Assembly: GCA_964057225.1 (NCBI GenBank)
Contig: OZ059900.1
Coordinates: 4,092,001 to 4,156,000, forward strand
Origin: Auanema rhodensis
Lineage: Eukaryota; Animalia; Nematoda
DNA length: 64,000 bases
Reading direction: 5' to 3'
How positions within the stretch are numbered: position 1 is the stretch's first letter; the number at the start of each line of letters is the position of its first letter. Made by a program: the position numbers and the translations under genes. Under the pieces are notes generated by a model, which ran no database searches, was not told where the DNA came from, and worked only from the letters and a program-made list of their open reading frames with translations. Of the stretch, positions 1 through 64,000 are shown one piece after another.

Positions 1-14
1 CAAAATTTTTTTTT

Positions 15-402
15 TACTTGATTGATTCTGTCAGCGCTGTAGCTTTCGTCAAGGATTAAGCCATGCCAACCGCTCACCGACCACAAAAAATTTTTTTTCA
101 CGTACTTGATTGATTCTGTCAGCGCTGTATGCTCAAGTAAAAGATTAAGCCATGCATGTAGAAAGTTGAACTTTTTAAGCCAAACCGCCAACCGACCAAA
201 AATTTTTTCTAGTCAAAAATTATGGAAATTTTTGAAAAAATATGCAAATTTTTTTTTTCAAAACTATTTTTCAGAGTAGTCTTATTCTATTTTCTGACTC
301 TTTTTACATATTTTACACTATATATGAAATATGTTTTGGAAAATTTCCCGATATGGCTTAATCCTTGAGGAAAGCTACAGCGCTGACAGAATCAATCAAG
401 TA
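15..402. repeat. Spacer cluster of 18S 5'-end copies (B 15-66 +, C 103-167 +, B' 353-402 -); copy A lies upstream of the window
   Basis: Each copy begins TACTTGATTGATTCTGTCAGCGCTGTA and contains GATTAAGCCAT. Confidence 0.92.
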
Positions 403-500
403 AAATTTGCCATTTTTATCAAAATTTTTGATTTTTTAAATTAAAATTCTCGGGTGACCATTTATATGCGCTTTTTTTTGAAAAATGGTTCCAATATTCC

Positions 501-652
501 AATAAAGTATACTTTTTCTTACAAATAAAGTATACCTTTTCTTACAAATAAAGTATACCTTTTTTAAAATAAGGTATCAATATTGCTATCGCTATATACA
601 ATCAATAAAACGTTATTTGAAACAAGAATAAGGTATACTTTCAGGTATAAAA
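501..652. repeat. 23-bp tandem repeat (AATAAAGTATACYTTTTCTTACA x ~3) plus degenerate copies; candidate Pol I terminator region; present in every unit
   Basis: Copies start at 501, 524 and 547, with partial copies at ~569 and ~627, immediately downstream of the 28S end on the minus strand. The repeat is seen directly; the terminator role is inferred. Confidence 0.75.
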
Positions 653-723
653 CAAAACATCCAATCAAAGGATAGTCTCAACAGATCGCAGTTTATAAAG
701 ACTGCTCTACTGGATACAACACC
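653..723 (-). rRNA. 28S rRNA: 28S/26S rRNA 3'-terminal ~71 nt fused to truncated 18S, unit 1
   Basis: The minus strand GGTGTTGTATCCAGTAGAGCAG..CTGCGATCTGTTGAGACTATCCTTTGATTGG..TTTTG matches the recalled LSU 3'-end pattern (GTAGAGYAG..CGATCTGYTGAGA..CCTTTG). The exact 3' end is approximate. Confidence 0.85.
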
Positions 724-1567
724 TACGAATGCCCCCGAATCGTCCCTATTAATCATTAATTCGACTCTCAAACCAATAAATAGAACCGAAGTCCTCTTTT
801 ATTATTCCATGATAGCACATACAAGCAATCGCTTGCTTTGAGCGCTTTGATTTATTCAAAGTAAATCCGAGCCAGTATACACACCGAAGTACATACACAA
901 AACCGACAAAATAGACACATCTATGATTACCGGCAAGCCGTATCACAGAAAATGCCTCAGATCCAACTACGAGCTTTTTAACTACAGCAATAACGTTTTA
1001 CACTAGTGGAGCTGGAATTACCGCGGCTGCTGGCACCAGACTTGCCCTCCACTGGGTCCTTGTAGAGCTATTTAAGCTCAGCTCAGTGAAATAATCAATC
1101 TAAAAAGATTGATCTTTTTATTTTTAGTTACTATCTCACTGAAGTAGTGGATAAGTTACGCGCCTGCTGCCTTCCTTGGATGTGGTAGCCGTTTCTAAGG
1201 CTCCCTCTCCGGAGTCGAACCCTAATTCTCCGTTACCCGTGATCACCATGGTAAAACTCTATATTACCATCAGGTTGATAGGGCAAACATTAATCTCGAA
1301 AAAAGACAGTAAAACCGTCGATTAACTGGGTTATTCAGAGTCAACAAACATTAAATTGGTTTGTACTAATAACTGCGTTGAACTTGGGAAGAAGAACAAC
1401 TATTAAGCATGTATTAGCTCCAGAATTACCACAGTTATCCATAGAAATCGAGAAAAATCATATCTGCTCTAATGAGCCGTTCGCAGTTTCTCAAAAATAA
1501 TGAACTTTATACATGCATGGCTTAATCTTTTACTTGAGCATACAGCGCTGACAGAATCAATCAGATT
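724..1567 (-). rRNA. 18S rRNA: Partial 18S rRNA (5' ~844 nt, truncated), unit 1
   Basis: The minus strand starts CTGATTGATTCTGTCAGCGC..AAAGATTAAGCCATGCATG (rhabditid-type SSU 5' end). It contains the conserved SSU motifs ACGGGTAACGGAGAATTAGGGTTCGACTCCGGAGAGGGAGCC, CCAAGGAAGGCAGCAGGCGCG and GTGCCAGCAGCCGCGGTAATTCCAGCTC, and stops at GGGGGCATTCGTA. Confidence 0.96.
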
Positions 1568-1870
1568 CGCAATAGAGAATCCATTATTTCTTACTAAACA
1601 ATATAAATATCGAGAAGTAGAATAATTTTTTTTTCCCAATTCACCAAAAAAATTAAGAAAGTTGAAAAATCACACAGAAACGACACATTATAGAAAATAT
1701 TCACATTTTTCAATGTGAACAAGTAAAATTGCAGATAACGAAAATTATTGTAAAAATTTTCTCCTGCTACCTTACGATTGTGATATCGTTTCGGTGAATA
1801 GTGTAACAATCTTCAGATATTATTTCATAATGTTTATATTCCGATGAAACATTCCAGTAAAAATTTTATG
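1568..1870 (-). promoter_or_regulatory. Putative 5'ETS / RNA Pol I promoter region; present in every unit
   Basis: Near-invariant non-repetitive sequence between the minisatellite and the 18S 5' end. Positional inference only. Confidence 0.5.
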
Positions 1871-1874
1871 TAAA

Positions 1875-60922: not shown

Positions 60923-61540
60923 TACTTGATTGATTCTGTCAGCGCTGTATGCTCAAGTAAAAGATTAAGCCATGCATGTATAAAGTTCATCATTTTTGAG
61001 AAACTGCGATAGGCTCACAGCTCAGAGACCAAAAAAATTTCCAAGTCCAAAAAAAATTTTTTTTTCAACATGTTTTCACGATACTCTCAAAACATTTTTT
61101 ACACATTTTTAAAGAGTTTTAACATTGGAATTGAGAAACAAAATTTTTTTTTTACTTGATTGATTCTGTCAGCGCTGTAGCTTTCGTCAAGGATTAAGCC
61201 ATGCCAACCGCTCACCGACCACAAAAAAATTTTTTTCACGTACTTGATTGATTCTGTCAGCGCTGTATGCTCAAGTAAAAGATTAAGCCATGCATGTAGA
61301 AAGTTGAACTTTTTAAGCCAAACCGCCAACCGACCAAAAATTTTTTCTAGTCAAAAATTATGGAAATTTTTGAAAAAATATGCAAATTTTTTTTTTCAAA
61401 ACTATTTTTCAGAGTAGTCTTATTCTATTTTCTGACTCTTTTTACATATTTTACACTATATATGAAATATGTTTTGGAAAATTTCCCGATATGGCTTAAT
61501 CCTTGAGGAAAGCTACAGCGCTGACAGAATCAATCAAGTA
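60923..61540. repeat. Cluster of four 18S 5'-end copies
   Basis: As 6817-7434. Confidence 0.9.
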
Positions 61541-61790
61541 AAATTTGCCATTTTTATCAAAATTTTTGATTTTTTAAATTAAAATTCTCGGGTGACCATT
61601 TATATGCGCTTTTTTTTGAAAAATGGTTCCAATATTCCAATAAAGTATACTTTTTCTTACAAATAAAGTATACCTTTTCTTACAAATAAAGTATACCTTT
61701 TTTAAAATAAGGTATCAATATTGCTATCGCTATATACAATCAATAAAACGTTATTTGAAACAAGAATAAGGTATACTTTCAGGTATAAAA

Positions 61791-61861
61791 CAAAACATCC
61801 AATCAAAGGATAGTCTCAACAGATCGCAGTTTATAAAGACTGCTCTACTGGATACAACACC
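61791..61861 (-). rRNA. 28S rRNA: 28S 3' tip, unit 20
   Basis: Same as unit 1. Confidence 0.85.
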
Positions 61862-62705
61862 TACGAATGCCCCCGAATCGTCCCTATTAATCATTAATTC
61901 GACTCTCAAACCAATAAATAGAACCGAAGTCCTCTTTTATTATTCCATGATAGCACATACAAGCAATCGCTTGCTTTGAGCGCTTTGATTTATTCAAAGT
62001 AAACCCGAGCCAGTATACACACCGAAGTACATACACAAAACCGACAAAATAGACACATCTATGATTACCGGCAAGCCGTATCACAGAAAATGACTCAGAT
62101 CCAACTACGAGCTTTTTAACTACAGCAATAACGTTTTACACTAGTGGAGCTGGAATTACCGCGGCTGCTGGCACCAGACTTGCCCTCCACTGGGTCCTTG
62201 TAGAGCTATTTAAGCTCAGCTCAGTGAAATAATCAATCTAAAAAGATTGATCTTTTTATTTTTAGTTACTATCTCACTGAAGTAGTGGATAAGTTACGCG
62301 CCTGCTGCCTTCCTTGGATGTGGTAGCCGTTTCTAAGGCTCCCTCTCCGGAGTCGAACCCTAATTCTCCGTTACCCGTGATCACCATGGTAAAACTCTAT
62401 ATTACCATCAGGTTGATAGGGCAAACATTAATCTCGAAAAAAGACAGTAAAACCGTCGATTAACTGGGTTATTCAGAGTCAACAAACATTAAATTGGTTT
62501 GTACTAATAACTGCGTTGAACTTGGGAAGAAGAACAACTATTAAGCATGTATTAGCTCCAGAATTACCACAGTTATCCATAGAAATCGAGAAAAATCATA
62601 TCTGCTCTAATGAGCCGTTCGCAGTTTCTCAAAAATAATGAACTTTATACATGCATGGCTTAATCTTTTACTTGAGCATACAGCGCTGACAGAATCAATC
62701 AGATT
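61862..62705 (-). rRNA. 18S rRNA: Partial 18S, unit 20
   Basis: Near-identical to unit 1. Confidence 0.95.
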
Positions 62706-63012
62706 CGCAATAGAGAATCCATTATTTCTTACTAAACAATATAAATATCGAGAAGTAGAATAATTTTTTTTTCCCAATTCACCAAAAAAATTAAGAAAGT
62801 TGAAAAATCACACAGAAACGACACATTATAGAAAATATTCACATTTTTCAATGTGAACAAGTAAAATTGCAGATAACGAAAATTATTGTAAAAATTTTCT
62901 CCTGCTACCTTACGATTGTGATATCGTTTCGGTGAATAGTGTAACAATCTTCAGATATTATTTCATAATGTTTATATTCCGATGAAACATTCCAGTAAAA
63001 ATTTTATGTAAA

Positions 63013-63869
63013 ATACTTTTCCTGCAAAAATACACCTACAAACTACTTTTCCTGCAAAATTACACGAAAAAAAATTTTTCCTGCAAAAATACACAAAGAA
63101 AAAGTTTTCATGTATAAATACACGAAAAATAATTTTTCCTGCAAAAATACACAAAGAAAAAGTTTTCATGTATAAATACACAAAGAAAAAGTTTTCATGT
63201 ATAAATACACGAAGAAACTACTTTTCCTGCAAAAATACACAAAGAAAAAGTTTTCATGTATAAATACACGAAAAATAATTTTTCCTGCAAAAATACACAA
63301 AGAAAAAGTTTTCATGTATAAATACACAAAGAAAAAGTTTTCATGTATAAATACACGAAGAAACTACTTTTCCTGCAAAAATACACAAAGAAAAAGTTTT
63401 CATGTATAAATACACGAAAAAAAGTTTTTCCTGCAAAAATACACGAAGAAACTACTTTTACCGCAAAAATACACGAAGAAACTACTTTTCCTGCAAAAAT
63501 ACACCTACAAATTACATTTCCTGCAAAAATACACGAAAAAAAATTTTTCCTGCAAAAATACACAAAGAAAAAGTTTTCATGTATAAACACACGAAAAAAA
63601 ATTTTTCCTGCAAAAATACACGAAGAAACTACTTTTCTTGCAAAAATACACAAAGAAAAAGTTTTCCTGCAAATATACACGAAAAAAAATTTTTCCTGCA
63701 AAAATACACGAAAAAAAATTTTTCCTGCAAAAATACACGAAAAAAAATTTTTCCTACAAAAATACACAAAAAAAAATTTTTCCCTGCAAAAATTCTAAAA
63801 AAAAATTTTTCCCTTGTAAAAATTCACTAAAAAATTTTTCTCCCTGCAAAAATGCGAAAAAAAAAAATT
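63013..63869. repeat. 29/30-bp minisatellite, unit 20
   Basis: Same monomers. Confidence 0.95.
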
Positions 63870-63926
63870 TATTCAGAAATACTTCCCCGAAGACATATGG
63901 TATCAAAATTTCGTTCCTCTCTCATT

Positions 63927-64000
63927 TACTTGATTGATTCTGTCAGCGCTGTATGCTCAAGTAAAAGATTAAGCCATGCATGTATAAAGTTCATCATTTT
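63927..64000 (+). repeat. 18S 5'-end copy A, cut by the window edge
   Basis: TACTTGATTGATTCTGTCAGCGCTGTATGCTCAAGTAAAAGATTAAGCCATGC... Confidence 0.9.

Follow-up and report, generated by a model that had tools for sequence, protein, structure and literature searches.

Potato 2D8 and similar repeats are satellites derived from the spacer of ribosomal DNA (rDNA), and laboratory minigenes for RNA polymerase I (Pol I) consist of a promoter, a short insert and a terminator, truncated precursor-rRNA (pre-rRNA) constructs being used in studies of the assembly of the small-subunit processome. An rDNA-derived repeat of tomato arose when modified rDNA units multiplied through unequal crossover and segmental duplication (Jo et al. 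2009, PMC2679016). The lamprey Germ1 repeat, which is germline-enriched and somatically eliminated, comprises a truncated 28S fragment and a region derived from an R2 retrotransposon, and the hagfish EEEb3 repeat is a tandem repeat of a 5S fragment (PMC9734144). The locus described here is a stretch of 64,000 nucleotides from an assembly of the nematode Auanema rhodensis (GCA_964057225.1, contig OZ059900.1, positions 4,092,001 to 4,156,000 of the forward strand), hereafter the window, which is filled from 1 to 64000 by 20 units, all on the minus strand and arranged head to tail, as found with Rfam models and exact-string searches. Each unit fuses the first part of an 18S rRNA gene to the very end of a 28S rRNA gene and keeps the surrounding spacer and flanks. 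The array is probably an rDNA-derived macrosatellite that descends from one internally deleted unit and has no function.

The spacing between successive 18S starts, which were located by an exact string in 20 of 20 units, ranges from 2,038 to 3,911 bp, and the array continues past both ends of the window, so that it counts at least 20 units. At Rfam gathering thresholds, the 64 kb hold 20 minus-strand matches to SSU_rRNA_eukarya (model positions 4-605, 438-446 bits), and each of these main matches is followed by a second, weaker match to the same small-subunit (SSU) model at positions 626-984. No match to 5.8S or to large-subunit (LSU) rRNA was obtained at these thresholds across the 64 kb, nor in a permissive Rfam scan of window positions 1-8700 that admitted E values up to 1, and no intact rDNA unit lies among the 20 mini units.

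What is missing from the units is the 3' half of 18S, both internal transcribed spacers (ITS1 and ITS2), 5.8S and about 98% of 28S. A 37-nt string that spans the breakpoint was found by exact search in all 20 units, identical in each and always 827-830 nt past the 18S anchor. The coordinates of the parts were set in a reference unit on the minus strand, the one with its 18S start at 4889, for which later Rfam searches covered window positions 3500-4300 and 4378-5200. Its 18S part scores 360 bits over model positions 1-544, with a further match from position 626 onward, and true 18S homology stops at nt 844, near position 900 of the 1831 positions of the SSU model; the 844 nt that are kept represent about 46-48% of the gene. 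Across the junction, positions 3324-3391 of the 3401-position LSU model align to window positions 3984-4053 on the minus strand (19.8 bits, E 0.022 in this 801-nt search).

A 31-nt string taken from the 28S piece matched two metagenome contigs, SMFC01000209.1 (L001) and SMFF01000844.1 (L002). Each holds a complete rDNA unit, probably from a nematode, and the two units are almost identical. L001, which served as the comparison unit for the breakpoint, was searched with Rfam as 1-900 and 1300-6695 and has a canonical layout, with 18S at 391-2145, 5.8S at 2543-2692 and LSU at 2951-6190, the last matching the full model. The 18S part of the mini unit aligns to L001 392-1244 with 78% identity over 866 nt, the measure of how distant a relative L001 is, and the 28S piece aligns to 6117-6192, that is the end of the 28S gene, with 89% identity to its last 73 nt and an exact match of 31 nt. 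In both canonical units, the 18S 5' part and the 28S end are homologous to those of the mini units and conserved in order and orientation. L001 holds the full 18S, ITS1, 5.8S, ITS2 and 28S spanning both pieces, which are 4,873 nt apart in it, whereas the mini units are without the intervening part: in the alignment, neither the L001 18S sequence past the breakpoint nor the L001 28S sequence before it is present in the mini unit. At most 1 nt is shared at the breakpoint, which would fit end-joining repair of one deletion, as judged against this distant relative. The junction string was not found in the metagenome contigs, and the exact products of the open reading frames (ORFs) of the units, looked up among gene calls on public assemblies, gave no record.

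These results bear on most of what had been said of this DNA before. The earlier note had counted 20 consecutive units with no intact one between them, and the 18S start and the 37-nt junction string are indeed each found 20 times; the Rfam comparison that it proposed gives 20 SSU matches and none to LSU_rRNA_eukarya or 5_8S_rRNA in the 64 kb. Its spacer subrepeats are present in 20 of 20 units as 29-bp repeats with higher periods of 58, 88 and 146 bp, and the upstream region, the 28S end and the downstream flank that it took to be retained were all seen, the 28S end being short. The statement that the 3' half of 18S is missing and the 5' part kept stands with a refinement, namely that the 844-nt piece reaches the central domain instead of stopping cleanly at the half. 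Having no complete 18S or 28S, no 5.8S and one and the same deletion in 20 of 20 copies, the units are unable to supply any of these rRNAs and cannot give ribosomes, as the note had argued.

The units are also highly homogeneous. Over a shared core of 1,465 columns, the mean identity among the 20 units is 99.8%, and a handful of point variants define unit types. Most of the variation in unit length comes from the array of 29-bp subrepeats, which measures 557-1,729 nt among units. The sole other sources are two units (56141 and 41500, units being designated by their 18S first base) that have no cassette of 18S 5'-end copies, and one unit with an extra 318-bp copy. Entire blocks of units have moreover been duplicated (see the table below). 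In the four-unit block, each pair of units shows 1-2 differences, unit 62705 differing from 48474 by 1 nt in 3,355 nt, and in the two-unit block, 26424 and 19364 show 3 differences and 22513 and 15598 are identical across 3,149 nt. Such near-identical blocks of four and two units point to recent unequal exchange. Both cassette-less units persist and lie in duplicated blocks. Variable sites number 8 in the 844 nt of the 18S part versus 4 in the 621 nt of the flanks (Fisher p 0.57), and no extra conservation of the 18S part over the flanks was thus detected among the 20 units. The proposal that one deleted unit was amplified and homogenised is well borne out by the single common junction, by these nearly uniform cores and by the duplication of multi-unit blocks. 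The functions that the note had suggested, namely a selfish or decoy rDNA, a nucleolar or heterochromatin scaffold or a non-coding RNA locus, are speculative.

Around the two rRNA pieces, the anatomy of the unit is largely constant. The unique region upstream of 18S (about 300 nt) has a constant length in 19 of 19 complete units and varies at only 2 sites in about 327 nt; in the flank downstream of 28S, 2 sites likewise vary among the 20 units. Just past the 28S end, a 23-24-nt element is repeated in this flank as about 2.5 direct copies (3821-3884, minus strand), with a related piece at 3940-3962; their position would suit Pol I terminator repeats. The cassette of the reference unit consists of one sense copy of the 18S start (about 3670-3725) and of five antisense copies, which are contained in a tandem duplication of 318 bp (2789-3489). 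Sixteen other units have three antisense copies each, and most units also carry one sense copy. Units 56141 and 41500 have no cassette copies and unit 51213 has two exact probe matches; over about 95 nt, the longest antisense copies depart little from the true start of 18S. The 29-bp subrepeats fall into at least two core types (GCAGG and TACATG), which alternate in the higher-order periods mentioned above.

No embedded genes or transposon reading frames were found in the window: all ORFs of at least 90 aa are confined to the 29-bp arrays and were rejected as repeat artefacts. Sub-threshold Rfam matches to the Caenorhabditis C/D-box small nucleolar RNA (snoRNA) ceN65 occur at 1446-1481, 4768-4803 and 8478-8513 on the plus strand (E 0.88), opposite the 18S strand. 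They were not accepted as a gene, since they lie below threshold and most likely reflect guide-target complementarity in reverse. Weak matches to microRNA and bacterial small RNA models were also sub-threshold and were judged to be due to chance.

Table. Coordinates of the units, of the duplicated blocks and of the parts of the reference unit (18S start 4889) in the window; ETS, external transcribed spacer.
Feature	Position	Strand	Basis or correspondence
18S first bases, units in order	62705, 59496, 56141, 54103, 51213, 48474, 44855, 41500, 39316, 36310	-	exact string and Rfam
18S first bases, continued	33304, 30301, 26424, 22513, 19364, 15598, 12449, 8599, 4889, 1567	-	exact string and Rfam
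Recent duplication of four units	39317..62705	-	62705/59496/56141/54103 match 48474/44855/41500/39316 one-to-one
Duplication of two units	12450..26424	-	26424/22513 match 19364/15598
Unique region from last 29-bp subrepeat to 18S start; presumed Pol I promoter and 5' ETS	4890..5193	-	direct reading
18S rRNA nt 1-844: 5' domain and part of central domain, including V4	4046..4889	-	Rfam SSU
Deletion junction; last 18S base 4046, first 28S base 4045	4030..4062	-	20 exact matches and alignment
Last 72 nt of 28S rRNA, terminal helix	3974..4045	-	Rfam LSU and homology to L001 6118-6190
Flank downstream of 28S; presumed 3' ETS and terminator region	3726..3973	-	direct reading
Cassette of 18S 5'-end copies	2789..3725	-	direct reading and repeat search
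Array of 29-bp spacer subrepeats	1872..2732	-	repeat search

How such an array could have come about can be outlined as follows. A single event would have removed about 4.9 kb of an ordinary unit, starting at 18S nt 845 and leaving only the last 72 nt of 28S, and the ends would have been rejoined with at most 1 nt shared, as in end-joining repair. The shortened unit, which would have retained its spacer, upstream region and downstream flank, may then have spread by unequal exchange of the kind that homogenises rDNA, an alternative route being the excision of a circle, its rolling-circle copying and re-insertion. Since the spacer has been kept whole, together with the sequences that precede 18S and follow 28S, the units could have inherited Pol I signals, and it is most likely descent, not selection, that accounts for their retention. 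The default expectation for such a locus is a silent or weakly transcribed repeat without function. Several points nevertheless weigh against this scenario of a functionless satellite. Its lack of function is precisely that, a default and no result. The kept 18S part is well formed (its 360 bits compare with 379 for the same part of L001) and every flank is intact, which agrees with an origin in the very recent past or with conversion still going on from canonical rDNA, and also with a unit kept for use. The details of the breakpoint, as placed here, depend on a relative in which the 18S 5' part is only 78% identical. Lastly, the reality of the array is judged from the assembled sequence.

This last point gives an opening to an assembly artefact, in which the assembler would have wrongly linked the 18S and 28S of canonical rDNA and repeated the mistake, and rDNA is notoriously difficult to assemble. 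However, the one junction is seen 20 times in units that differ by subrepeat number, cassette content and point variants, the ordered duplicated blocks would need real reads spanning each unit, and a breakpoint with at most 1 nt shared is too short to mislead an overlap assembler. The occurrence of one junction in ordered, differing units thus argues against an artefact, which we find scarcely credible. Alternatively, the units might be active natural Pol I minigenes, each with its own promoter and a pre-rRNA of about 1.2-1.3 kb made of the 5' ETS, the 18S 5' domain and half of the central domain, the 28S terminal helix and the 3' ETS. Such an RNA would bind the U3 small nucleolar ribonucleoprotein (snoRNP) and early factors of the small-subunit processome, and might serve as a decoy or a regulator, nucleate a body that resembles the nucleolus or supply antisense ribosomal small-RNA pathways. 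In yeast, partial processomes do assemble on truncated pre-rRNAs that end past the 5' ETS or the 5' domain. In line with this idea, all units retain their full spacer and upstream region, an 18S piece with its 5' end and 5' domain intact and the flank behind 28S, and the upstream region has few variable sites. Nevertheless, homogeneity is equal across segments and is explained by recent amplification, and two units lost the spacer cassette yet were not removed. A transcribed minigene or decoy appears unlikely.

A different kind of alternative, fully compatible with a functionless satellite, concerns where the array resides: it might lie in germline-restricted DNA that is shed from body cells, hence the tolerance of a large block of defective rDNA. 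Auanema rhodense loses about 61% of its germline genome, mostly tandem repeats and including most large blocks of them, to elimination, and the eliminated regions are argued to be where repeats accumulate under weak selection (10.64898/2026.08.27.747507). This extensive elimination of tandem repeats speaks for a germline-restricted location, and so does the parallel with lamprey Germ1, a truncated 28S repeat in eliminated DNA (PMC9734144). Against it, neither the palindrome that resembles the elimination motif (GGC, 3-4 nt, GCC) nor telomere repeats are found in the unit. The window as a whole contains no GGC-(3-4 nt)-GCC palindrome and no TTAGGC dimer, its sole GGC..GCC being a site with a 2-nt spacing in 18S V4. 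The eliminated RNA loci that are named are 5S, tRNA and U2 arrays, not units of 18S/28S type, the X chromosome keeps large repeat blocks in the soma, and the preprint on elimination makes no mention of an 18S/28S mini array (10.64898/2026.08.27.747507). It does report, in eliminated X-chromosome DNA, a 14-kb block with five identical matches to the elimination motif spaced 3.5 kb apart (10.64898/2026.08.27.747507); that this block is the present array was considered and rejected despite the similar unit size, the motif being absent from the window. On balance, we hold a germline-restricted location to be a serious, if tentative, possibility that falls somewhat short of an even chance. Very unlikely, in our opinion, is a combination of the two ideas in which the mini units would function as Pol I genes in the germline or early embryo, and programmed DNA elimination would later remove the array from body cells. 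The truncated pre-rRNA would then trap U3 and early factors of small-subunit assembly, or supply antisense ribosomal small RNAs via the inverted 18S-start copies, with the outcome that ribosome production would be tuned or a nucleolus-like body built.

As it stands, the array is a well-documented rDNA-derived satellite. It offers a clean example of the birth of a satellite from a gene array, in which one deletion, apparently end-joined, was followed by amplification whose steps can be read as duplicated blocks. Since the units keep the surroundings of the transcription unit and almost none of its product, they also represent a natural test of which rDNA flanks are enough for Pol I loading, nucleolar association or silencing. 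If the array belongs to a nematode that discards some 61% of its germline genome, it would in addition make it possible to test directly whether defective gene arrays find shelter in eliminated DNA.

The likeness to previously described systems is partial in each case. The repeat in tomato, like the array here, is tandem, descends from 45S rDNA, has an expanded or variable number of spacer subrepeats and has lost rRNA coding capacity (PMC2679016). However, the tomato units keep 18S, 5.8S and 25S, which have diverged by 6-11% and are broken by retrotransposon and spacer insertions (PMC2679016), whereas the array here displays one clean mid-unit deletion, no transposon and an 18S piece that scores like a working gene. 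Germ1 and EEEb3 are amplified truncated fragments of rRNA genes in animals that discard part of their germline genome and are taken to show that defective rDNA piles up in eliminated DNA (PMC9734144). In contrast to Germ1, 18S is joined here directly to the 28S end and the whole spacer is kept, and a retrotransposon-derived segment was not found in the units. Like laboratory minigenes, the units here pack what is presumed to be a promoter and 5' ETS, part of 18S and the region behind 28S into one short stretch, but those constructs are engineered and known to be transcribed. Satellites derived from rDNA are thus already known, and what is distinct in this one is the clean fusion of 18S to 28S, with all flanks in place and no mobile element.

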